Part shown: positions 2,244 to 24,007 of the stretch, in pieces
Layout: every line of letters starts with the position of its first letter
How positions within the stretch are numbered: position 1 is the stretch's first letter
Source of the DNA: Macrostomum lignano
Lineage: Eukaryota
Reading direction: 5' to 3'
NCBI GenBank assembly: GCA_002269645.1
Contig: NIVC01005165.1
Span: 1-24,007, forward strand
Length of the DNA: 24,007 nt
Position numbers and translations under genes: made by a program
The notes under the pieces: model-generated
Told to the model about the DNA's origin: nothing
The model's database searches: none
The model's input: the letters and a program-made list of their open reading frames with translations, nothing else

Positions 2244-2884
2244 TTTATTTCCTCGCCTCTCCTTTCTCCCATTTCCCATTTCCCATCTCTATTTTCGATT
2301 TCCTCTCCTCTCTCCCCGCAGTCATGCTCTAGTTTGTCTATCTGGCAATTGAGATAAAAAATTGCCAACCCCTACGCCTAGAGAGAATGCATTGTGCTAA
2401 ATGAAGTTTCAGTCAGTGATCATTTCTGAGAAAATCGAATGTAGACTCGATGCTTTAACCTGAATCAACTGTAATGACTGACTGAGTCAATTCCCCAGTC
2501 AACTGGCTGAGCTACAAAATATCCAGCTAAGATCCGGGATCCAAGCTGTCACATCCTGTGCTGAGAAGTGCAAAGCAGCTTATGCAGTCTCTGGGGCGGA
2601 ACTTCGGGAGCTGCCCAAATAAATCAAACACAACAGCAGAAGAAAAGGTGACAAAGACGCTGACAGGATGGATCTGGGGGATTTGTGGAGACGGATCCCA
2701 TCGTGAGATGCTACGATCGTACGAGTGATTCTGGTAGATCAATGCAGTGACAATTTTTGAGCAAATAATTATACTAGGAACGCGACTTAAGCATCGGACA
2801 CATAAAAATTATCGAAATTTTTTATATTGTTACGAAATCGAAATTAAACAGTTCAATTCAAATGACCCAGGGGAAATTCCGGCC

Positions 2885-3651
2885 CAAGTGCCCTTGGGAA
2901 TCCAAACAAAATAACCTTGGGAAATCCAAACCAAATGGCTTTGGGGAATCTAAACCGAACAACCTTGGGAAATCCAAACCAAATCGCCTTAAGTAAATAA
3001 TCCAATTTAATCCAATAAATAATCCAATAATCCAATCCAATCCAAACCAAATGACCTTAAACCCAATCAAAACCAAATGACCTTGGGGAATCCAAACCAA
3101 ATGACCTTGGGGAATCCAAACCAAATAACCTTAAGTAATCCAAACCAAATGACCTTGGGGAATCCAAACCAAATGACCTGGGGAATCCAAACCAAATGAC
3201 CTTGGGGAATCCAAATCAAATGACCTGGGGAATCCAAACCAAACCAAAGTGCTTAAGGAATCCAAAACTACGAGTAACTTACCTTGGAGAATCTAAACTC
3301 AGTATCCTTAGAGACCGTGGTAAATCCAAAACAAGTGAACTTAGGGAATCCAAACCAAATGACCTTGAAGAATATAAACTGTGCGACCTTGTAGAATCCA
3401 AACCAAATGACCTTGGGGAATCCAAACTAAATGACTTTGGAGAATCAAAACCAAATGACCTTGGGGAATCCAAACTAAATGACTTTGGAGAATCCAAACC
3501 AAATGACCTTGGGGAATCCAAACCAAATGACTTTGGAGAATCCAAACCAAACTTTGGAGAATCCAAACCAAATGACCTTGGGGAATCCAAACCAGATGAC
3601 TTTGGAGAATCCAAACCAAATGACCTTGAGAATCCAAGCCAAATGACCTTA
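2885..3651. repeat. 23/24-bp minisatellite, consensus GGGGAATCCAAACCAAATGACCTT
   Basis: Many recognisable units. Translates as (ESKPNDLG)n on + and (LDSPRSFG)n on -. Confidence 0.95.
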
Positions 3652-3696
3652 AGCTAGACTTCTTCACTAACCCCAGAAAGCTCCACAACCCTGCAG

Positions 3697-4722
3697 ATCC
3701 TATACGCATTCGCGAACGCGGCCATGCTGCAGCGCAACCAGTGGACCACCTGCGTGACTCTGTTCCGCACCTTGGCCACCCTGAGCCCCATCGCAGTGCG
3801 CAACCGTCTGACCAGGTGCGCCCAGCTGGCCGTCTTCAACCTGGTGCTGCTCATCTCGCTCACCTTCTGCGTCCTGTTCATCGCCTATCCGAGATCCCGG
3901 TTCCAGGAGCTGCTGAGAATGTCCCGGATATTCCAGTCCGGCATACCCATACCAGTGGTGTTGATCAGTTCCATTGTGATGGCTGCTTTTCTCTACGCTA
4001 CCTACAGACCGTTTCTCCTGCAGCAGCAGCAGCAGCATCAGCAGCAACAGCAACAGCAGAACCAGCTGCTTCCAACGCCAGCCGGAAGCGACATGGCTCA
4101 GAATCAGCGTCGGAACACTCGCATAGCAACGGCGATCGTGCTCTGCCTGGCGGTGACCTTCTGCGTGTTCGAAGCGCCAGGAGCCGTGATGCTGATGTTC
4201 GACTGGCAGCAGTTCACCACCGCCGACTGGTTCTTCAGCTTCAACGACACGCTGGTGTCGCTGGACACCGCCTGCAACTTTTTGATCTTCGTCTGTCTGA
4301 GCCGCAATTTTCGTCGAACAGCCGGCGCCGCCCTTCCGACAGCTTGTCGCGCTGCAGCTGGCGTTGGCGGCGGAGGCGGAGGCGGCGGAGGCGCTGGAGG
4401 GAGAGGCGCGGGCGTCGGTAGAAACGGCGCCGCTTATGGCGGCGGCGGTCGCCGAGGCGGTGGCGTTGGCAGCGTCGGTCGCGGAGGTCGCAACGAAATT
4501 TCGAGAGCCACAGAGAGAAGCAGCGGAGCCAGCCGAGTTGTCAGAGGCTTCGGCATCAGCGGTGGAGAAGGCGGCTGTGGCGGTGGCAGCGGCGGCGCCG
4601 GTCCAAGCGGACTCTCCCTGGCCGGTGTCGCTGAGGTGGGCATCAGCGAGACTCTGGACGATCCGTTCCTGCCGACTGAGGAGTACCAGATGACCGCTCT
4701 GTCCAGAAGCCACCGCGACTGA
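3697..4722 (+). CDS. Class A (rhodopsin-like) GPCR, exon 2 (TM3-TM7 and C-tail); resembles FMRFamide/myosuppressin/Srw-type peptide-receptor-like families
   Basis: TM3 ILYAFANAAMLQRNQWTTCVTLFRTLATLSP (FR in the DRY position); TM4 LAVFNLVLLISLTFCVLFIAYPR; TM5 IPIPVVLISSIVMAAFLYA; TM6 IATAIVLCLAVTFCVFEAPGAV; TM7/H8 DTLVSLDTACNFLIFVCLSRNFRR. Open frame from the acceptor at 3697 to TGA at 4722. Confidence 0.88.
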   Translation: MLYAFANAAMLQRNQWTTCVTLFRTLATLSPIAVRNRLTRCAQLAVFNLVLLISLTFCVLFIAYPRSRFQELLRMSRIFQSGIPIPVVLISSIVMAAFLYATYRPFLLQQQQQHQQQQQQQNQLLPTPAGSDMAQNQRRNTRIATAIVLCLAVTFCVFEAPGAVMLMFDWQQFTTADWFFSFNDTLVSLDTACNFLIFVCLSRNFRRTAGAALPTACRAAAGVGGGGGGGGGAGGRGAGVGRNGAAYGGGGRRGGGVGSVGRGGRNEISRATERSSGASRVVRGFGISGGEGGCGGGSGGAGPSGLSLAGVAEVGISETLDDPFLPTEEYQMTALSRSHRD

Positions 4723-4867
4723 CGGAGTCGCTTGACAGAAGGGATTGGGAACGGAAAGCTGCGTCGGTTTGAGAGTCTGTGTTCAAGGACCTTAGAAGAC
4801 TTGGATTGAAAATGGTCAAAAGTTATTGGTATAGTTAGTTTTCTAATTAGGTAGTAAGTTTTTTAGC

Positions 4868-4877
4868 TTAGTTTAGT

Positions 4878-4919
<42 letters not shown>

Positions 4920-4920
4920 C

Positions 4921-4962
<42 letters not shown>

Positions 4963-4963
4963 C

Positions 4964-5036
<73 letters not shown>

Positions 5037-5037
5037 T

Positions 5038-5074
<37 letters not shown>

Positions 5075-5075
5075 C

Positions 5076-5119
<44 letters not shown>

Positions 5120-5120
5120 C

Positions 5121-5206
<86 letters not shown>

Positions 5207-5207
5207 C

Positions 5208-5276
<69 letters not shown>

Positions 5277-5297
5277 TTTAGTTAGTTAGTTAGTTAT

Positions 5298-5334
<37 letters not shown>

Positions 5335-5335
5335 C

Positions 5336-5383
<48 letters not shown>

Positions 5384-5408
5384 CGTTAGTTAGTTAGTTA
5401 GTTATTTA
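4868..5408. repeat. (GTTA)n tetranucleotide microsatellite
   Basis: About 135 units with occasional GTTC, GTCA and TTTA variants, starting ~150 bp after the GPCR stop. Confidence 0.98.
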
Positions 5409-5723
5409 GCAGATACTAGACTATTTAGTATCTTTTATACTACTAGACTACTTTTATTTTCAGTCCAGATCTTAGAGGTCCTCGGCGGGTTGTTTAGTCA
5501 CAAAATATTTATTGCTTGTTTTGCGCTTAGTCGTGTTTGTCTCTAGAATGTTTATTACTGAAGTATGAACAGATTTGATAATTGTTAATCCAGGCCTAGT
5601 ATTAGAATTGCTATAGTATTGATGTGCACTAAAATTTCTGCAAACTTTTCCGTGTCTGTCTTTTCAGCGCCCAGTGTTCAAATACTGTAACATTGGTAAC
5701 TTGAAATGGTAACTTGTTATAAG

Positions 5724-6110
5724 GGAGACAGTGAGAAGGTTACAGTGAGAGGGAGACAGTGAGAGGGAGACAATGATAGGAAGACAGTGAGAGGGAGACA
5801 AGGAGAGGGAGACAGTGAGAGGGAGACAGTGAGAGGGAGACAGTGAGAGGGAGACAGTGAGAGGGAGACAGTGAGAAGGAGACAGTGAGAGGGAGACAGT
5901 GAGAGGGAGACAGTGAGAAGGAGACCGTGAGAGGGAGACCGTGAGAGGGAGACAGTGAGAGGGAGACAGTGAGAAGGAGACCGTGAGAGGGAGACAGTGA
6001 GAAGGAGACAGTGAGAGGGAGACAGTGAGAAGGAGACAGTGAGAGGGAGACAGTGAGAGGGAGACAGTGAGAGGGAGACAGTGAGAAGGAGACAGTGAGA
6101 GGGAGACAGT
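5724..6110. repeat. 14-bp minisatellite GTGAGA(G/A)GGAGACA
   Basis: About 27 units. The (SLSLSPSHCLPLTV)n translation has a 42-bp period, equal to 3 x 14 bp. Confidence 0.97.
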
Positions 6111-6636
6111 AAATATTGTTAACGCGCCCCAGTGTTGTCCTTCAGACTCCACTAATTAGTGGAGGGTAAATAACTCCTAAATAGTAACTTTTAATCAAAA
6201 AAACTTTTAATGAATTTATTTTAAAAATATAATGTCTGTGTCAGTTGTATCAGTTTAGTCTTGTACATGATTCTTAGCATTATTGTGTACTTTTAATAGT
6301 ATCATTAGTAGAAATGTTATAATCGAACCATTATTACATACATGCAAAGTTCGTATATATTAAAAAAATATACATTGTTAGCTTCATGTCAGCTTATCTT
6401 AGCTTGTAATATTGTGTTTCTGTGAAAATATAATATATGATTAATGCATAAATACAGATTTTTCACAAAAATTTTTGTTGTGGATATAAATTTGAAAGTA
6501 GTTTTGCGCTAGGGAGCTTTCTATGTCTCAATTGATTTTGGTGATCAAATGGACTGAGGAGAGTGTGAATTCCGATGAGGGAGGGAGTCGAGTGTGCTGA
6601 TGAAGAAGAGGGAGCTGAGGGAGCTGAGGGTGCTGA

Positions 6637-16618
<9,982 letters not shown>

Positions 16619-16894
16619 ATCTCTCACTTGTCGAACTTTCCTGTTGTGCCAAATTTGGAAAGCGCCAAGAAGAGTTTTTTGATTGGCACAATTCGCTGCA
16701 ATGCACGATTGATGAAGTGAGTTGCCCCAATCAGTCCAAAAACATTTTTGGGATTGCCTTCTTCAGTTGACGTCTTTTAGACTCGTGAACGTGACGGTAA
16801 CGCCTTGCAACTTTGTGAAAGTTTCGCTATGAAGGAGAAGGCCAGTTCACAGTTGAAGCTCTTCTCATTACTAGTAAGTTCTCAGCCGGAAAGC

Positions 16895-18515
16895 ACTACT
16901 CCTCTCTAGGTGCCATATTGACGGAAGGACCTTGGCGACCGCAGTCTTCCACAAAGCACGGTCCTTTGAGGCGTGGAGTCTTTCCAGGCTGTTCATGTTC
17001 ATACATCGAGACAGAAAGGTGATTCGCTGTCTCCTTAAATTTTTTGTTCAATCTTCCCAGTCTTACTCATCATAGGGCGCAAAGAGCACCACTTGCAGTC
17101 TCCGAATGTTCGCCATCAAGTTTCTTCTGCAGAGCATCTTCACTCGGTGTGTGACTGGTCCAGCTCACTCTCAGGATGCGCTTCAAGATCCACAACTCCA
17201 TTGTCTCGACTCTTCACTCTTCTATCCATTGCTGATGATATTGTCCAGCATTCTGAGCCGTAGTTCAGACAAGGAGAACACAGCAGTCAAGGATTCTTAA
17301 CTTGGTCTTCAGATTGACTTTCCTGTTTTTCAGGATTTTGTTCAGCTGTTGGAAGGAATCCATGCTATTCTGATTCTTCATTTGATTTTCTGTTCACCTT
17401 TTCCTTTCGAAGTAATCACACTTCCCAAATATAGTTGAATTTTTTGCTTCCTTGAATGGTTCTCTCTTCTGTTTGGGAACAAACCATGCAATCCTTGAAC
17501 ACATCTTCTTACTTTCCAATACCGCTCACCCTGTTCAGAATTTCTTGCAACTTCTCTGAGCTTAATTTCTTAAGAACAACTGTCTTAATCTGCGCAAACT
17601 TTGACATTCTTACAGCAGTACCTTGCTTCTAATACAGATTATTGAGAACTCAAGTGTCTTTTCCATTAATGTAAATTTATTCTAACATCTTCATCAGTTC
17701 TTTGTGTCTGACACTGTCGAAAGCTCTTACTTAGTATAGATAGCTCAAAGAAAATACAGATTCTTCTTCATTTCAACAGCTCTTTCACTAAGCATTCGAA
17801 CAATTCGAAGATGGCAGTTCGTGTTTCACAGTCTCCAGCAAAGCCGCACTGAACTTCAAAGACTTCTGGACGCACGGTCGTAATCTACTTCACGCTCCCA
17901 TCATCAGAACCCTTATCAGCACCTTGGTAACGTGGCTCATTCGCATTCAGTTGCTCCCGTCTTTTTGGCATGGCAATGAAGCTTGGCTGACTCATATCTT
18001 TTGTTCAATTTGTTCAATTACATGCTCACAATGGCATCTCTCTGACTTCCGATTTCCAGATTGCTGGTCCACGTGGCTCCTTTCTGAGGTTGGGCTGCTC
18101 ACTGCTGTGATCATGGAAGAGATCGGTGACAGATCAGACCATTGCTTCAGCACCTTCTCGTTTCCAATGCTGCAACCTGATGCAGCTACATTGGAATGCA
18201 TATCAGTCAGGTTTCTGTCCTTCTGCTTCTCAATCTCTTCACATCTCTAATTTAGCCAATTGCCCATTATTCTTCAGTGCACATTGCGGCCTAATTCTTC
18301 AGTCTAGCTTCATGTACACTTTTGTCTTCCATGAGCAGAAGGATTTCTCTGTCATCCACTTCTTGCATTTCTGCTTCGTCTTCAATGGAATGGCTTCTTT
18401 TGCACCTTCGTTCACTCCCACTTGGTCTTAGTTTGTTCGACTTCTTGTTGTCGAAATCGCGATTCCTGACTTTCACATTGAACTTTGCCTTGACTGGTTC
18501 ATCTTGTTGTTAGAC
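16895..18515 (-). mobile_element. Decayed, 5'-truncated RTE-clade non-LTR retrotransposon (LINE) ORF remnant
   Basis: Minus-strand fragments in the expected order: FNVKVRNR, KEAIPLKTKQKCKKWM, GPAIWKSEVRDAI, FIAMPKKTGATECE, MSHVTKVLIRVL, EVQCGF, MLSERAVEMKKNLYF, AFDSVRH, LNNLY, LQEILNRV, FNY, NYGSECWTIS, ending RQYGT*. Many stops and frameshifts. These match RTE/BovB-type RT and its flanking motifs. Confidence 0.9.
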
Positions 18516-19091
18516 TGGTAGAAGATCCAAAAATCAAACGCAGCATTGTTGTAACAAAAGATTTCGCCAGACAGAGCGGCTGTGTTAGCAAAGCCCGAAG
18601 GCAGCCAGCCTCACACGGCAGACAGATTCTGCAGCGATGTCGAGGACCTGCTCAGGGACAGTTCGACTTGCTTTTGCACTGCGGGCATAAAAATAAGAAA
18701 CTCTTGTTCGATTCCAGATTTACAGGCAGGTGTTTTCATTCTTGGTCTAAAACTAATTTGGCAAATTTTAATCGGATTCGTTAAAGAATCAGATTCCTGT
18801 ATTCGCACTACACCTGGGTTTGTCATGTGAGGTTGAACTTCATCAGAGTTCATGAGGTTGAACTCACAGCTAGCCACCGCCATGCACATGAGCTGCATAC
18901 TTGATAAATACGTTCCTCCTACTGGCATCAAGCTGCTACTTTAAGTAGCAAAGCAGCAGCTACGATAGCAATTAGTCTGTAGCCAAGCCGAACCGCACCC
19001 AAACCTCATTTATTTCAATTGGACGGTGGCAGCGCTGCCAATGGCAGTCAATTGTGACGCAAATGAGCAAAAATAGATAAATACCAGCAAA

Positions 19092-19940
19092 ATGCGGCGC
19101 TCTCCGCATTCCACAGCACCGATACCGAGCCGAAATGGAAGCTCTTTGGAGAATTCTGACAGCGATTGCAGCAGTTCTGATGCAGAACTTCGGCAGGTCC
19201 GCAAGCCAAAGCGAGGGCCTCGATGGCACTGAGTAGGAGATACTGGAAGCCATTATGCTCGAAAATGAAACTAAAATTTCACGATACCTGCAGATGGCTT
19301 CTAACGTTGATAGGCTCTTCAGTATCAATGAGATGACATTCTCATCGCTTCACATTGCATGTGAAATGGGAAAAGTCAAAATTATCGAAATGTTCATTCA
19401 AGCCAGAGCTGACGTCAATCTTCAACGAAGCGATGGCTGCTCACCTCTCTACATTGCATCAGCGAAGGGTCACCACCAAGTTGTGAGCTCACTCATCAAA
19501 GCACAAGCTGACGTCAATCTTCAAGAAGTCGATGGCTGCTCACCTCTCTACATTGCATCACAGAATGGTCACCACCAAGTTGTGAGCTCACTCATCAAAG
19601 CACAAAAGCTGACGTCAATCTTCAAAAAGTCCATCGCTACTCACCTCTCTACATTGCTTCACAGAATGGTCACCACCAAGTTGTGAGTTCACTCATCAAA
19701 GCAGAAGCTGACGTCAATCTTCAAGAAAATGTTCATGGCTGTTCACCTCTCAACATTGCATCACAGAATGGTCACCACAAAATTGTGAACCTACTCACCA
19801 AAGCACAACAAGATGACGCCAATTCTGAGTATATTGGGAGTCAAAACTCCAGTGTACTTTGTTGTTGTTGTTGGAGTAAAAAAGTAACTAAAAGTTCATC
19901 TGCTTTGGAAAAACCACCGAAAGAGCCAGAATTTGAGTAA
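19092..19940 (+). CDS. Ankyrin-repeat protein (~5 repeats), intronless, possibly a pseudogene
   Basis: Canonical repeats such as ADVNLQxxDGCSPLYIASQNGHHQVVSSLIKA. ORFs 19255-19686 and 19683-19940 join across a 2-bp AA insertion at ~19606. The upstream ATG at 19092 is separated by one frameshift and a TAG at 19234, so the start is uncertain. Confidence 0.8.
19408..19805 (+). repeat. Near-identical 99-bp coding tandem repeat (ankyrin units)
   Basis: GCTGACGTCAATCTTCAA recurs at 19408, 19507, 19608 and 19707. Confidence 0.93.
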
Positions 19941-20539
19941 GTTTCAATCATTAGATTTGCTTTTTTCTATTTAATTTTTGCTCGTTTTTTAATAGCATTT
20001 ATCTTTTAGTTTTTCGGGATTGAAAAAGTTCGTGCAATTTTCGGCGGCCAAACAAATAATTTTTGTTGAAATTTTAACAGAAACAGCACAAAAACAGCGA
20101 AAGGCAAAAGAGAGAGTTTTGAATATGGTTTTGAAATTGTCCATAAGACAGCCTGGCGTAATGACAAACTCAACTGGCCATTATTTCAGCTTTAGCAGGC
20201 GTTTGAACCATAGACGATTAGTTAACTATGCATTTATTAACTGACATAAGGGAATAATCGCAAACAGTCTACATGGAATTCTGGAATACACTGAAAAAAG
20301 GATAGTCAAGACATTTTAGCTAACAAACAATGGATAAATAATCAGCGGTCCCAGTGCGTGGCAACGATTGTACATATACTTTCCTTCAGACGCAATGAAG
20401 TTTAATTTAGGCCATTATTCCACACTTTTGGAACTTTCCATAGACAAAAGAGTCAATCAGTATATTTTAACCAATAAGCAACGGATGCAAATACGAGAAC
20501 TCGTATAAATGAAAAGATATCAGGGCCTCACGGCTAGTA

Positions 20540-20807
20540 GTCTATGGCCAAAACTGTGTCAAACAAGAAAAACATGTACTACACCTTTTCACGTTCAATT
20601 TTGATCAAAGTCCAGTTCTAAAAAAACTAGCGGAAATTCAATTCAGATAATTCAGACTTGGGCAACAAACCACCGTTCAAAACATTATGCAACCGAAGCA
20701 AGTTTTAGCCATAGACAAAATTGTCCCCAGTCTGAATCGTCTGAATTGAATTTCCGCTAGTTTTTTTAGAACTGGAGTTTGTTCAAAATTGAACGTGAAA
20801 AGGTGTA
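20540..20807. repeat. Two interleaved inverted repeats (MITE-like insertion)
   Basis: 16-bp IR (15/16 identical) at 20540-20555 / 20701-20716, and an ~88-bp IR (~90% identical) at 20580-20668 / 20721-20807. Confidence 0.9.
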
Positions 20808-20913
20808 AAAGCTGCATTCATCCATGCATTAAATAAACGTGAACACAAAACCAGAACAGGAGCAATTAAATGTCACTGTCTATCAACGTTACTGCAGATG
20901 TCAAAGACGCCTA

Positions 20914-22441
20914 TTACTTACCCCCAAAATTAAATGTACAGTTTTCAAAGCGGCAATTTTCGAAAATACGGGACACTTGTGCCTGGGCGTTCATCACTGC
21001 AATAATTTAAAGCGAAACTGTTTTTACACCAAAGGAACATTTATTCACCAACAAACATTTTCTGATAAATAGACATTCATTTAGTTACTCAAACTTACCA
21101 CTTGAAACTTGCACTTCATTAGCCGGCTTGACTTCGACAGGTGAGATACCGTCGACACCTGTCTCAATGCATGGCATGTTTACGCCGTTCGATTGCTTGG
21201 GCACCTCGATAGGACGATCTAAGGCCGTGCTTACAGCCGTCGACGCTTCAAAAACTGCGCGGTCGCGCTTCCTTGATAGATATCGGCGCACCGTTTTTTC
21301 GCTCTTCTGACCGGTGATGCACATGATATCATTCATTCCATGGCCAGTCTCGTGCAAGTCCGCGATTCGCGTCACCCGTATACAATGATTTGTATACTCT
21401 CGAGATAGATTGCATTGCTTGCTAAGCCGTTTCATCAATGAGGTGAACCAATTGATGCCTCGTACCTGCTGAGATAAAAAACGCAAACAACCCGTTATCT
21501 TGTCATTCGTAGTGCTCTTGGAACAAGCAGTCGTCCTTGCGATCCGATGGGAGCAGCGAAATGTTTTTTGACCAGGTCCCGCTGCTTCCCATACAGCCTA
21601 GCTTGCTTCGGGCGGTCGTCCTTACAACGCGTAGGATCGGAAATTTGATTCTTCGTAGGCAGTATTGGAAGCGACATATAGGGTCTGCCATCAGCATCCA
21701 CCTTTGTCAACAGACTGCTTGCTGCCTTCAATGCCGGCAGGTGCTCTTGCCCACGCTCTCCAAAAACGTAAAAAATGGTGAACAATACCTCATCCTGCAA
21801 CTTCTCAGCGGTACTTCCGTCGAAATATGCTCGCAACTTTGTTAGATCAGCGTCCTCGATAGCTTCAAATTGCTTGGTAACGCCTCAGCATTGTGGAATT
21901 CCCTCACCTTCACTCTTAGCATGCGATTGGAGCTCGCAAACTCTTCTCCGTCAATGAAGTTGATAGAGCGCTTCAGAATTAGGTTAAAGTACCGGTGTAT
22001 CCCAGCTCTAATGCACACAAGACTTGACGGCGAATACTTTTCACCGTTCGTCCTCTGCAGACCGAAATAATAATAGCGCAAGTACTCATTCAGCTTCCAC
22101 ACTTCCATCGTCACAGGCGACTCCTTGGTTGTCTCAGAGAGAAACTTCACGAAAGCCTGCCCATGCCGATTCATCTGGTCCACCGTTGACTTTGGCAGTG
22201 ACTGAATTTCTACACCATCCATTCTCGAACTCAGGTCCATGTCGTCGCCCGCCACCTCCGGAAGTTCGGGCAGTTCTTCAGTGCCATGATCGTTCTCAAG
22301 CCACTTAATGAAATCACTCAGGGCCTGGTCATCGTGATGTTCTCCATGCATGCTTGTATCCGACAAAAGTTGCAGCTCGTCCATCTTGACACCATTGAGC
22401 GAGTCGACCGGAATATTTTTCCAATTGATAAATGCAGGCAT
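20914..22441 (-). CDS. Crypton/DUF3504 (KCTD1/KIAA1958-like) tyrosine recombinase; exons 22441-21099 and 20996-20914; frameshifted
   Basis: N-terminal core-binding-like region (LNEYLRYYYFGLQRTNGEKYSPSSLVCIRAGIHRY); catalytic motifs FGERGQE (R), TKN (K), YTNHCIR (HxxR), ITGQKS and RRY (Y). Phase-1 GTAAGT...TTGCAG intron, then VMNAQAQVSRIFENCRFENCTFNFGGK*. Frameshifts at ~21885 and ~21490-21570. Confidence 0.88.
20997..21098 (-). other. 102-bp spliceosomal intron in YR copy 1
   Basis: Minus strand AGTG|GTAAGT ... TTATTGCAG|TGATG. Splicing restores the frame into the cysteine-containing tail, and the same intron position is seen in copy 2. Confidence 0.85.
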
Positions 22442-22578
22442 TTTGAAGCTACAAAAAAGCGTCCCTTAATATGTCAAGAGTGATAAGAAATGGACATCAA
22501 TATTGCAAGTTTTCTGTCTATGGTCCAGGTAACCTCTGAAGACAACATAGCGAGCAACGTTTAGTCTATGGTCAAGAG

Positions 22579-22666
22579 AAAAGTGTGGAATAATGACCGC
22601 GTCAAAAGTGTGGAATAATGGCCGCAAAAGTGTGGAATAATGGCCGCAAAAGTGTGGAATAATGAC
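22579..22666. repeat. Four-copy 22-bp tandem AAAAGTGTGGAATAATGGCCGC
   Basis: Copies start at 22579, 22604, 22626 and 22648. It is the reverse complement of the outer part of the motif at 20410 and 23511. Confidence 0.95.
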
Positions 22667-22718
22667 TGCGCGCTGAGTGAAAGTATAAATACAATGCACT
22701 TGTGTAGTATGCAACTTC

Positions 22719-22779
22719 GTTGAATAATGGCATAGACACTCGTGCGCTACGCGCACTCGTGTTTTGGCCATTATTCAAC
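22719..22779. repeat. 61-bp imperfect hairpin built on the GGCCATTATT motif
   Basis: GTTGAATAATGGC-ATAG-ACACTCGTGCGC / TAC / GCGCACTCGTGT-TTTG-GCCATTATTCAAC; about 24 of 29 positions pair. Confidence 0.85.
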
Positions 22780-22986
22780 TCAGTGCAGTTGCATACTATA
22801 CAATTTACCATTGTTTGGCGAGCGCCGGTAGGCGCGAGCCATAGACAAATCGTTGTCACCTACTGCGACCGCTGATTCTTTGCATTGTTTTTCTGTTTGA
22901 GGATCCTAAAAACAATGCATTGTTTGTAGTAATGTATTGTTCTGCATAAAAAATGCGAATAATGATCGTCAAATTGCTAAACAATG

Positions 22987-23189
22987 CAATGGCCGTATGC
23001 AGAAAGCTTAGTCCAGACTAGCTAGTCCAGACTTGGGTAGTTCAGTCTATAGTCTATGGTCTATAGCTACCCTTGTTCTGTCTATAGTAGACCGGTCTAA
23101 CTTTGTGTTTCTGCATACCAAATCCAAGTCCAGGCTGGCTTTTCAAGACCGGACTACCCTAGACAGAGCTTTCTGCATACGGCCCATTG
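22987..23189. mobile_element. ~200-bp MITE-like element with 22-bp terminal inverted repeats
   Basis: CAATGGCCGTATGCAGAAAGCT at 22987-23008 versus AGCTTTCTGCATACGGCCCATTG at 23167-23189 (one indel). Internal AGTCCAGACT x2, a GTCTAT(A/G) tandem and the palindrome TAGACCGGTCTA. No clear TSD or superfamily. Confidence 0.7.
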
Positions 23190-23735
23190 TGTCTAGTTTC
23201 GTTTGGGCCACAAATGGGCCACTATGGCCATCATCTGGCTTGCGCCAAGTGGAAAATGCTATGACACAAATCCCTAGAATCGCTTAGTGAACAATTCCCG
23301 TCTGGGAAGTTGTGTCCTAGCCGTTTTGAATTGGTTTTTGGACGAAACTAGACACAATTCCACTATCAAGAGGTCACGCTTCACACACAACTGCCTTACC
23401 GCGTCTCGGCCTACCGGCCTCGACCTATGGCAGTTTTATGTGAAGCTTAACCTCTTGATAATCCTACATTGTAATTATACTTTTACCCAGACGCAATGAA
23501 AAAATATTTAGGCCATTATTCCACAGTTTTGATGTGTACCATAGACATTTGGATTGAAAAAATCCATCGCACAGTATTTTTGTAATAAATACAGAACAAC
23601 AAGAAGTAAATGAACAAAAAGGAAAAATCATTAAAACTAAAGTACCAGCTACACGAAAAGAGTTAATAATAAATGTCACAGCTAGTGCAGTTCATCAGTT
23701 TGTAGTCGAAATTTGACAATGTAAAAATCAATTTG

Positions 23736-24007
23736 TCACCCAAAGTGAAACATGCAGTTCTCAAAGCCGCAGTTCCCAAAGATGCTCGACACTTTAGCCT
23801 GATGATTTGGCTGCAAAAGGAGTTGGTCTATTTTGAATGTTTTCTATGAAAGAGAAATACAGGTGCTCAAGTATAGTTGCCGAACTTACCATTTGAAAGA
23901 TGCACGTCTTGGTTAAGTTGGCATGCGACTGATGAGCTTCGTCTGATGAGCCTCTTTGGTACCGCAGTATCCAAGCTGGATTCTTTGGGACTGGCGGCTG
24001 CTCGACT
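23736..24007 (-). CDS. 3' end of a second, paralogous Crypton-like tyrosine recombinase gene (exons >24007-23890 and 23810-23736)
   Basis: ...NQDVHLSNG|GTAAGT (79-bp intron) TTTTGCAG|...HQAKVSSIFGNCGFENCMFHFG*, homologous to copy 1 (NEVQVSSG| ... QAQVSRIFENCRFENCTFNFG). 46 of 63 nt are identical without gaps in the last exon. One extra base follows the acceptor. The catalytic domain would lie beyond the window. Confidence 0.8.

Follow-up and report, generated by a model that had tools for sequence, protein, structure and literature searches.

A probable nest and stack of Crypton-type recombinase elements with pentamer-bracketed hairpins in a Macrostomum lignano contig

The window analyzed here is a eukaryotic sequence of 24,007 nt from Macrostomum lignano (contig NIVC01005165.1), and the term refers to this whole stretch. 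Its final 3.9 kb (20136-24007) is a stack of small Crypton-type elements, two with a recombinase gene and about three without. The two genes, YR1 and YR2 (YR, tyrosine recombinase), lie on the minus strand. To its left, at 20136, the stack borders on unique DNA that follows an ankyrin open reading frame (ORF). The YR1 element is a discrete insertion nested in the hairpin of a gene-less module. We read the region as a nest and stack of elements of the CryptonA/DUF3504 kind, whose circles would integrate at the pentamer ATTGT and preferentially at the ends of resident elements. We give this reading a probability of roughly 0.7.

YR1 is encoded in two exons. The main exon runs leftward from 22441 to 21099 on the minus strand. 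It is followed by an intron of 102 nt (21098 to 20997) and a last exon (20996 to 20917) that ends in ..VMNAQAQVSRIFENCRFENCTFNFGGK and a stop codon. YR2 is encoded on the same strand. The window contains only about 39 codons from the tail of its main exon (24007 to 23890), together with the intron (23889 to 23811) and the last exon (23810 to 23736). Only the C-terminal tail of the YR2 protein is therefore covered, as the window ends (24007) downstream of the expected catalytic Tyr codon. The two genes have the intron donor (..TG/GTAAGT) at homologous positions, and a ..IFxNCxFENCxFxFG tail is encoded by each last exon. The alignable core of the last exons is about 70 to 75% identical.

The YR1 frame changes near 21885-21893 and near 21510-21531. 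Read against relatives, these shifts are three 1-nt indels, each at a short homopolymer. Frames alignable with relatives contain no premature stop. For the last exon of YR2 to be in frame with its donor, 1 nt has to be corrected in an AAA run. Assembly indels are as likely as true pseudogenes to account for these defects, because the ankyrin ORF also breaks at an A-run. Small introns were considered as a cause of the YR1 frame changes and were rejected; the gaps are only a few bases long and have no splice signals.

The last intron is kept in the closest relative (L002) and is absent from M. lignano P0003. The FxNCxFxNCxF tail forms a separate mini-exon in the window and in L002 and is contiguous in P0003. 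It is conserved from flatworm to sea urchin (alignment A1, columns 541-580).

The conceptual translation of YR1 retrieved 33 relatives. The closest (P0001, from a Logan contig) was 55% identical to YR1. M. lignano proteins named "Tyr recombinase domain-containing" were 43 to 48% identical, a large set from marine and estuarine metagenomes about 30%, and a sea-urchin relative 26%. A scan of viral contigs retrieved no relative. Residues R231, K265, H349, R352, and Y384 of the conceptual translation are in invariant alignment columns. They follow the catalytic order R..K..H-x-x-R..[H/W]..Y of tyrosine recombinases. Gln replaces the second conserved His in YR1 (Q374, within TGQKS at about 21310), P0001 to P0003, and P0005; marine relatives have His there. 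The Gln is a variant of this position, with the nucleophile kept.

The DUF3504, QRICH1, and Phage_integrase profiles each match 6 of 11 aligned sequences at an E value of ≤1e-3. Pieces of YR1 alone gave E values of 0.004 for QRICH1 and 0.009 for Phage_integrase, both below Pfam cut-offs. The family profile, compared with the PDB, matched XerA (E value, 6e-4). The AlphaFold model is of P0001, the closest relative, and not of YR1; its pLDDT (predicted local distance difference test score) was 84.5. Its best PDB matches were to Cre, over both domains (E value, 1e-10; target template modeling score, 0.65 to 0.68; about 340 columns). Further matches were IntI (2a3v), Tn1549 Int, and XerA/XerH, and the closest structural ones were Cre-loxP complexes. 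The YR1 protein is a predicted Cre-fold tyrosine recombinase, probably of the DUF3504/CryptonA kind. There was no other long ORF and no other Pfam match within 20367-22814. Relatives of 1.8 to 2.4 kb carry one gene each and no other long ORF. ORF and Pfam scans found no reverse transcriptase or RNase H in the 2.4-kb unit.

The units of the stack share a layout, described here in gene sense. It begins with ACAAT on the target side, a few bases, a hairpin palindrome of about 100 nt, and a few more bases. An inner inverted repeat starting with ATTGT follows, then repeated short motifs, and then the recombinase gene or nothing. The same motif then appears again, and an outer inverted repeat ends in ...ACAAT. 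Four such layouts are present in the window. On the plus strand, the stack is an alternation of repeat-bounded bodies (ATTGT...ACAAT) and palindromes.

The YR1 element (el1) spans 20367-22814 on the minus strand. ATTGT is found at 20367-20371 and again at 22810-22814; the unit itself is 2,443 bp (20372-22814), with one ATTGT copy belonging to the target. The 3'-terminal block of el1 (20367-20446) contains the outer terminal inverted repeat (TIR; 20367-20389), GGCCATTATTCCACA (20410-20424), and CCATAGAC (20438-20445). An inverted copy of this block lies upstream of YR1 at 22505-22695. It begins with ATTGTATTTATACTTTCACTCAG and holds two CCATAGAC motifs. It also contains four tandem 22-bp repeats, AAAAGTGTGGAATAATGGCCGC, at 22579-22664, which bear the GGCCATTATTCCACA motif, and an inner TIR (22673-22695) ending in ..ACAAT. 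Because of this inverted copy, the block can be recognized as a terminal inverted repeat with subterminal sites.

Four bases outside the inner repeat is the hairpin of el1, P1 (22700-22803, minus strand), and ATTGT (22810) is six bases further. P1 is 104 nt long with a z score of -8.6 (DNA fold). Its arms carry GGCCATTATTCAAC and bear the same motif as the block. The apex is GA-GTGCGC-GTA-GCGCAC-GA on the gene-sense strand (22742-22756).

El1 interrupts a second hairpin, P0. The left arm of P0 (20336-20366) was split off by el1 and is 85% complementary to the right arm (22851-22881). The remainder of P0 (22815-22888) contains the loop and apex (22815-22850), the right arm, GC, and ATTGT (22884-22888). 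The apex is GA-GCGCC-GGTA-GGCGC-GA on the plus strand (22822-22835). Module b0 (20136-20331) contains a degenerate third direct block (20136-20216), which reads ATTGTCC..GGCCATTATTTCA..CCATAGAC, and an inner ...ACAAT at 20327-20331. We joined 20327-20371 to 22815-22888 in silico to obtain the empty site. It folds into a 119-nt hairpin (-39.4 kcal/mol; z score, -9.5) with the family apex, and the fold weakens steadily when the cuts are moved outside the pentamer.

Gene-less modules fill the 650 bp that separate the two YR elements, and each shares its pentamer with the next. Module elY (22884-23190) contains a TIR-bounded body (22884-22985; ATTGT...ACAAT), a 5-nt spacer, and the palindrome PY (22991-23184; z score, -8.9), followed by C and ATTGT at 23186. 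Module elX (23186-23472, minus strand) contains perfect 17-bp TIRs (23186-23202 and 23342-23358) and the hairpin PX (23364-23460; z score, -7.7). The PX apex is GA-GGCC-GGTA-GGCC-GA on the minus strand. A 7-nt spacer leads from PX to ATTGT at 23468, which is the first five bases of the YR2 block. Only the 3' part of the YR2 element (el2; 23468-24007, minus strand) is in the window, and it contains the terminal block (23468-23547) and the gene tail. The outer and inner ends match at 22/35 positions in el1 and 21/35 in elY; in elX the match is perfect over 17 bp.

All four palindromes have ACAAT 4 to 5 nt before them and ATTGT 1 to 7 nt after them. The brackets are ACAAT 20327-P0-ATTGT 22884, 22691-P1-22810, 22981-PY-23186, and 23354-PX-23468. 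From the local pentamer frequency, the chance of such bracketing of four palindromes is about 4e-14. The hairpin folds in the window have z scores from -7.7 to -19. The apex motif occurs exactly three times in the window, in P1 and PX on the minus strand, as the genes do, and in P0 on the plus strand.

The blocks at 20367-20446 and 23468-23547 form a pair of direct repeats with a spacing of 3,101 bp. Their identity is 78% in an ungapped comparison, and they match at 66/83 positions in the best local alignment, which is the top local alignment between the two 3' regions. The 3' untranslated regions (UTRs; stop codon to block) of YR1 and YR2 have no colinear similarity, and the same is true of the sequences that flank the two blocks on the left. 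An earlier note on this DNA had reported blocks with this spacing that were better conserved than the sequence between gene and block. This is borne out, as is the position given for the first block; the second starts at 23468 and not at 23467. The note had also described two same-strand YR genes with a common intron position and tail and about 73% identity in the last exon, which agrees with the alignments above.

Two motifs of the block are strongly over-represented. GGCCATTATTCCACA occurs 7 times (0.03 expected), and CCATAGAC occurs 9 times (1.0 expected). The window positions of CCATAGAC(A) are 20208, 20438, 20540, 20709, 22516, 22564, 22839, 23052, and 23539. It is present in every module of the window, and its sites include the hairpin arms and a place just upstream of the start codon. 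It is also present in the M. lignano element L001 (9623, 9707, and 9894), whose protein is only 47% identical. CCATAGAC(A) is a second conserved cis motif.

The same architecture was found in relatives; the loci compared include 80 from a metagenome scan. At least 13 families have, upstream of the gene, a hairpin between (A)CAAT and ATTGT. In 9 families, a copy of the inner repeat is found in inverted orientation near the 3' end, with ≥15/18 matching positions. About half of the families have exact 10-mers in common between the hairpin arms and the 3' subterminal region. The layout recurs in relatives that are only about 30 to 50% identical in protein. In L001, a 104-nt palindrome is followed by a 23-nt repeat, which is 96% complementary to a copy beyond the gene, and by CCATAGAC motifs.

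Mobility is evident among the metagenome relatives. L007, L008, and L009 are 99.9 to 100% identical from ACAAT and the hairpin to ...GGACAAT, with ACAAT at both ends, and then their flanks differ. L012, L013, and L014 are 100% identical up to ...TATACAAT and then continue into three different flanks. Such identical copies in different flanks diverge exactly past ACAAT.

The hairpins also share an apex. It consists of GA, a stem of 4 to 6 bp that is usually G+C rich, a G..A loop of 3 to 4 nt, and GA. In 250 kb, the apex motif occurs 19 times on the gene-sense strand versus 5 times on the antisense strand. Upstream of a YR gene are 17 of the 19 sense-strand apices, and the remaining 2 head the next stacked unit. 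Where upstream hairpins with the apex were found (14 loci), it is on the gene-sense strand only. The arm sequences differ completely between families, with pairing kept.

L004 (6-82) and L005 (1-77) contain one element (99.4% identical) from two samples, with the top of the hairpin reverse complemented in L005. This may be a real flip/flop isomer or a k-mer assembly artifact through the 42-nt palindrome arm. L019 (3596-6138), on a Diadema setosum chromosome, contains a distantly related DUF3504 gene (4001-5365). Its flanks hold a 33-nt inverted repeat (3596-3628 and 6106-6138), palindromes (3627-3733), and a hairpin of 121 nt (5554-5674). Ends with inverted repeats may be more widespread in animal Cryptons than has been reported.

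Independent head-to-tail stacks were also found in two metagenome contigs, L029 and L035, by reading the contigs. L029 (4,050 nt) encodes two same-strand recombinase ORFs with 56% protein identity. A hairpin precedes each gene, and the two hairpins are 91% identical. At the junction, ...GTGAACAAT is followed directly by GGATGAATA and the hairpin; nothing separates the end of the first element from the spacer and hairpin of its neighbor. Before its first ACAAT, L029 has a third sequence that resembles a 3' end. In L035, an element ends in ...GATAGACAAT and is followed at once by a different hairpin and ATTGT. L004 contains two convergent genes. Among contigs with overlapping ends, a sign of a circle or a one-element tandem, only the L029 stack was found, and no contig contained a self-junction.

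From this layout we infer circle excision, strand exchange at the pentamer, and a preference for resident ends. The element would leave as a circle, with the hairpin placed between its two inverted repeats. The circle junction would contain the outer repeat, ACAAT, a spacer, the hairpin, a spacer, ATTGT, and the inner repeat as one palindrome of about 150 to 170 nt. In simulation, such junctions fold as a single hairpin that has an outer stem and a main stem with a small internal loop between them. The expected junction of the el1 circle (2,443 bp) is ...GTATATGTACAAT-GGTAAA-hairpin P1. A Cre-like recombinase may then exchange strands within ACAAT/ATTGT, between the pentamer of the circle and that of the target. 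A resident end would be a preferred target because it offers the same half-site, a repeat and pentamer beside a hairpin. Such a preference would lead to head-to-tail stacks with shared pentamers and to nests such as el1 in the P0 stem. The hairpin would be part of the recombination site. We lean slightly toward its acting as a folded strand or an extruded cruciform rather than as plain duplex. The reversed P0 apex may be the product of an inversion between the inverted sites found on both sides of every hairpin; alternatively, P0 may be part of the neighboring body.

The earlier note had proposed that site-specific integration of related elements at a shared att-like site produced a head-to-tail pair, from which a 3,101-bp circle carrying YR1 could be excised. 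Successive integration is favored over duplication by the split hairpin, the unaligned flanks, and the independent stacks. The units do share a site, which is the ATTGT/ACAAT pentamer beside the hairpin and not the whole 80-bp block. The natural excision unit is accordingly 2,443 bp, from ATTGT at 20367 to ATTGT at 22810, and the 3,101-bp interval is a composite. The two YR elements have the same orientation and are not adjacent. YR1 is nested, and a further pair of gene-less modules separates it from YR2. The note had also compared the stack with an integron-like array. The layout is analogous in simulated circle junctions; no platform is present here, and the recombinase genes are inside the units.

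Several observations weigh against a nest and stack built by circle integration at resident ends. The repeats of module el0 are weak (16/35), and its P0 apex is reversed; in the gene-less part, it is therefore ambiguous which hairpin goes with which body. The elY palindrome does not contain the canonical apex. The preference for resident ends, with the 5-bp site alone being a weak target, is deduced from the stacks themselves. YR1 has frame changes and YR2 is represented by its tail only, with a frame defect, so current activity is unproven. No stack was flagged when about 14 families whose 3' flank is visible were screened automatically, and most relatives with such a flank are not stacked. 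Set beside the stacks of L029 and L035, this makes stacking recurrent and not the rule. Only the strand-asymmetric apex separates a folded from a duplex site, and an RNA or promoter role explains the apex equally well.

The last point leads to an alternative that keeps the same elements and circle integration and has the palindrome work only as duplex DNA. The palindrome would be a symmetric protein-binding array or a promoter/5' UTR element, and a Cre/lambda-type duplex reaction would take place at the pentamer. The hairpin arms carry the subterminal-repeat motif in the window, L011, L029, and seven families, which fits duplex binding. The best structural matches are Cre-loxP complexes, and the hairpin occupies the expected place of a promoter, upstream of the gene. 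Against a plain duplex stands a mini-hairpin that is strand asymmetric and on the gene-sense strand only at 14 loci, with arms that diverge and pairing that is kept. Gene-less modules retain the hairpin, and the two putative binding repeats would be about 110 bp apart unless the hairpin is extruded. We consider a purely duplex role possible and somewhat doubtful.

Ancient tandem (segmental) duplication of a one-YR-gene unit of about 3.1 kb, with later divergence and with blocks kept as regulatory or structural sequence, was the alternative named in the earlier note. It would explain same-strand paralogues with a common intron position, tail, and downstream block, and the regular 3,101-bp spacing. 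Only the block and the coding tail align, however, and the UTRs and left flanks do not. The modules that make up the spacer are unrelated, and every one has inverted repeats and a hairpin of its own. The hairpin split by YR1 forms again when the element is taken out in silico, and relatives are multicopy in different flanks. Duplication is thus improbable.

Mobilization by another enzyme is more improbable still. A DDE transposase, for example, might act on the inverted repeats, with ATTGT as a target-site duplication and the recombinase as a passenger or resolvase. The inverted repeats and 5-bp direct repeat are superficially like those of cut-and-paste elements, and the short gene-less derivatives resemble miniature inverted-repeat transposable elements (MITEs). 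The 5-bp repeat has the same sequence in all units and in most families, however, and is part of the inverted repeat itself. A DDE-type target duplication was rejected for ATTGT on account of this near-constant sequence. One physical end is a hairpin and not an inverted copy of the other end, and no other long ORF is present in the 2.4-kb element or in relatives of 1.8 to 2.3 kb. The units thus have neither inverted repeats at both physical ends nor the variable target-site duplication of cut-and-paste TIR elements and MITEs. The least probable alternative is an immobile cluster of domesticated DUF3504-type host genes with palindromic regulatory DNA. In its favor, such genes were domesticated repeatedly in animals (PMC3212892), and there is an intron, which a relative shares. 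Against it, YR1 retains the catalytic residues, both copies have frame defects, the architecture is common to multicopy elements in different flanks, and gene-less modules have the same ends.

The rest of the window contains repeats and a few coding sequences. Its left two thirds are mostly repeats. The largest is a 10-kb (AGAT)n microsatellite at 6636-16615, with about 2,500 copies and a 98% match. Further arrays are found at 946-1565, 2884-3650, 4832-5409, and 5722-6110, and consist of (GTCT)n, a 24-mer, (TAGT)n, and a 14-mer. A 332-amino-acid ORF (3724-4722, plus strand) has a weak match to 7TM_GPCR_Srw, a serpentine chemoreceptor family (E value, 1e-5). It is overlapped by a long antisense ORF in G+C-rich sequence. 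Short ORFs on the minus strand at 16870-17200 (..ILRVSWTSHTPSEDALQKKL) may resemble the region after the reverse transcriptase of non-long-terminal-repeat retrotransposons. The ankyrin-repeat coding sequence (19255-19940, plus strand) is made of 99-bp repeats. It is present as two ORFs, with a frame break in an A-run near 19600 that may be an assembly indel. An Rfam search of 16600-24007 gave no match.

A 246-bp foldback (20571-20816) lies inside the 3' UTR of el1. It is near perfect (-85 kcal/mol; z score, -18.8), with CCATAGACAAAATTGT close to its top. It was considered as a further unit of the same kind and rejected, as it contains neither bracketing pentamers nor the canonical apex. It is probably an unrelated or degenerate insertion.

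Crypton DNA transposons were reportedly described by Goodwin et al. in 2003. The stack resembles Cryptons, and CryptonA in particular, in having a tyrosine recombinase as the only gene, with no reverse transcriptase and no DDE transposase. The 5-bp direct repeat at both ends of el1 (ATTGT at 20367 and 22810) compares with 4 to 6 bp in Cryptons, and gene-less derivatives and proposed excision and reintegration of a circle are shared features. In the literature, Cryptons are without terminal inverted repeats and have direct repeats of 4 to 6 bp that are taken as the crossover site. For animal Cryptons, a 2011 paper (Kojima & Jurka, PMC3212892) gives no C-terminal domain and no terminal repeats. 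A 2026 study of DUF3504 CryptonA elements describes termini that are variable or poorly conserved (Glomhopper, PMC13465315). Unlike those described, the elements here have defined ends, with inner and outer inverted repeats, subterminal motifs, and a hairpin of about 100 nt with a conserved apex. They also differ in the FxNCxF C-terminal tail and in their head-to-tail stacks. No description of hairpin or terminal-repeat ends, or of stacks, was found for CryptonA in full-text searches of the literature; Repbase Reports could hold one. The stack is therefore filed as a variant within the Crypton kind.

The units are like integron cassettes in their single orientation, short conserved joining core, and imperfect palindrome at each unit end. 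Both systems use a tyrosine recombinase, IntI (2a3v) is among the structural matches of the P0001 model, and the strand-asymmetric features here suggest one folded strand. The simulated circle palindrome has a layout analogous to attC in its outer stem with the putative crossover, small spacer, inner stem with a second box, and variable top. Unlike integrons, the stack has no platform (no attI, fixed integrase gene, or common promoter Pc), and the recombinase is inside some units. No intI, attI, and Pc beside a cassette array were found in the window. The host is eukaryotic, the hairpins are longer, folding is deduced here, and the homology claimed is that of the general fold only.

By analogy, a clade of Crypton-type elements of animals and marine eukaryotes might use a folded hairpin site as integrons use attC, with autonomous and gene-less units that stack like cassettes, head to tail, at the ends of one another. 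We offer this tentatively and think it rather unlikely. In such a site, the two terminal repeats would pair as the outer stem, and ACAAT/ATTGT would hold the crossover point. Next would come a short unpaired spacer, an inner stem bearing a second box for protein binding, and the strand-specific top mini-hairpin.

Other systems are more distant. DIRS, Ngaro, and PAT elements encode a recombinase from this superfamily. Their repeats are unusual, being inverted or split and containing internal complementary regions; a circular intermediate has been proposed for them, and they tend to insert into elements like themselves. Unlike them, the 2.4-kb unit here has no reverse transcriptase or RNase H and is far smaller. 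Starships, which are fungal and have a DUF3435 "captain," also have a recombinase near one end reading inward and target-derived short direct repeats, with terminal inverted repeats in some. They are 15- to 700-kb cargo carriers of the DUF3435 family, whereas no DUF3435 Pfam match was found here. We know of no hairpin module described for Starships. CTX-type Xer recombination on folded single-stranded phage DNA and the circles of Tn916/Tn1549 are similar in that a site forms only when inverted repeats meet. Tn1549 Int and XerH/XerA are also among the structural matches. These systems are bacterial with another site organization, and the similarity is in logic only.

Cryptons are the least understood class of eukaryotic DNA transposons, and their ends have been called hard to define. 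To our knowledge, no Crypton transposition reaction has been reconstituted. The window and its relatives give a concrete candidate for the recombination site, with a 5-bp crossover, inverted repeats, motif repeats, and a hairpin with a strand-specific apex. The gene-less mini-elements of about 280 to 310 bp are possible natural substrates. The features of the site explain why such elements occur stacked and nested. They also raise the possibility of a eukaryotic recombinase that works on folded DNA, as integron integrases do. If the site is folded, the stacks would be a eukaryotic counterpart of cassette arrays, and flip/flop inversion of hairpins might arise from them. Tool builders would be interested in a recombinase that is small and self-contained and has a short core site. 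The DUF3504 genes ZMYM2-4, QRICH1, and KCTD1 descend from Crypton-type elements. The ancestral DNA site could help to ask what the ZMYM2-4, QRICH1, and KCTD1 proteins bind.

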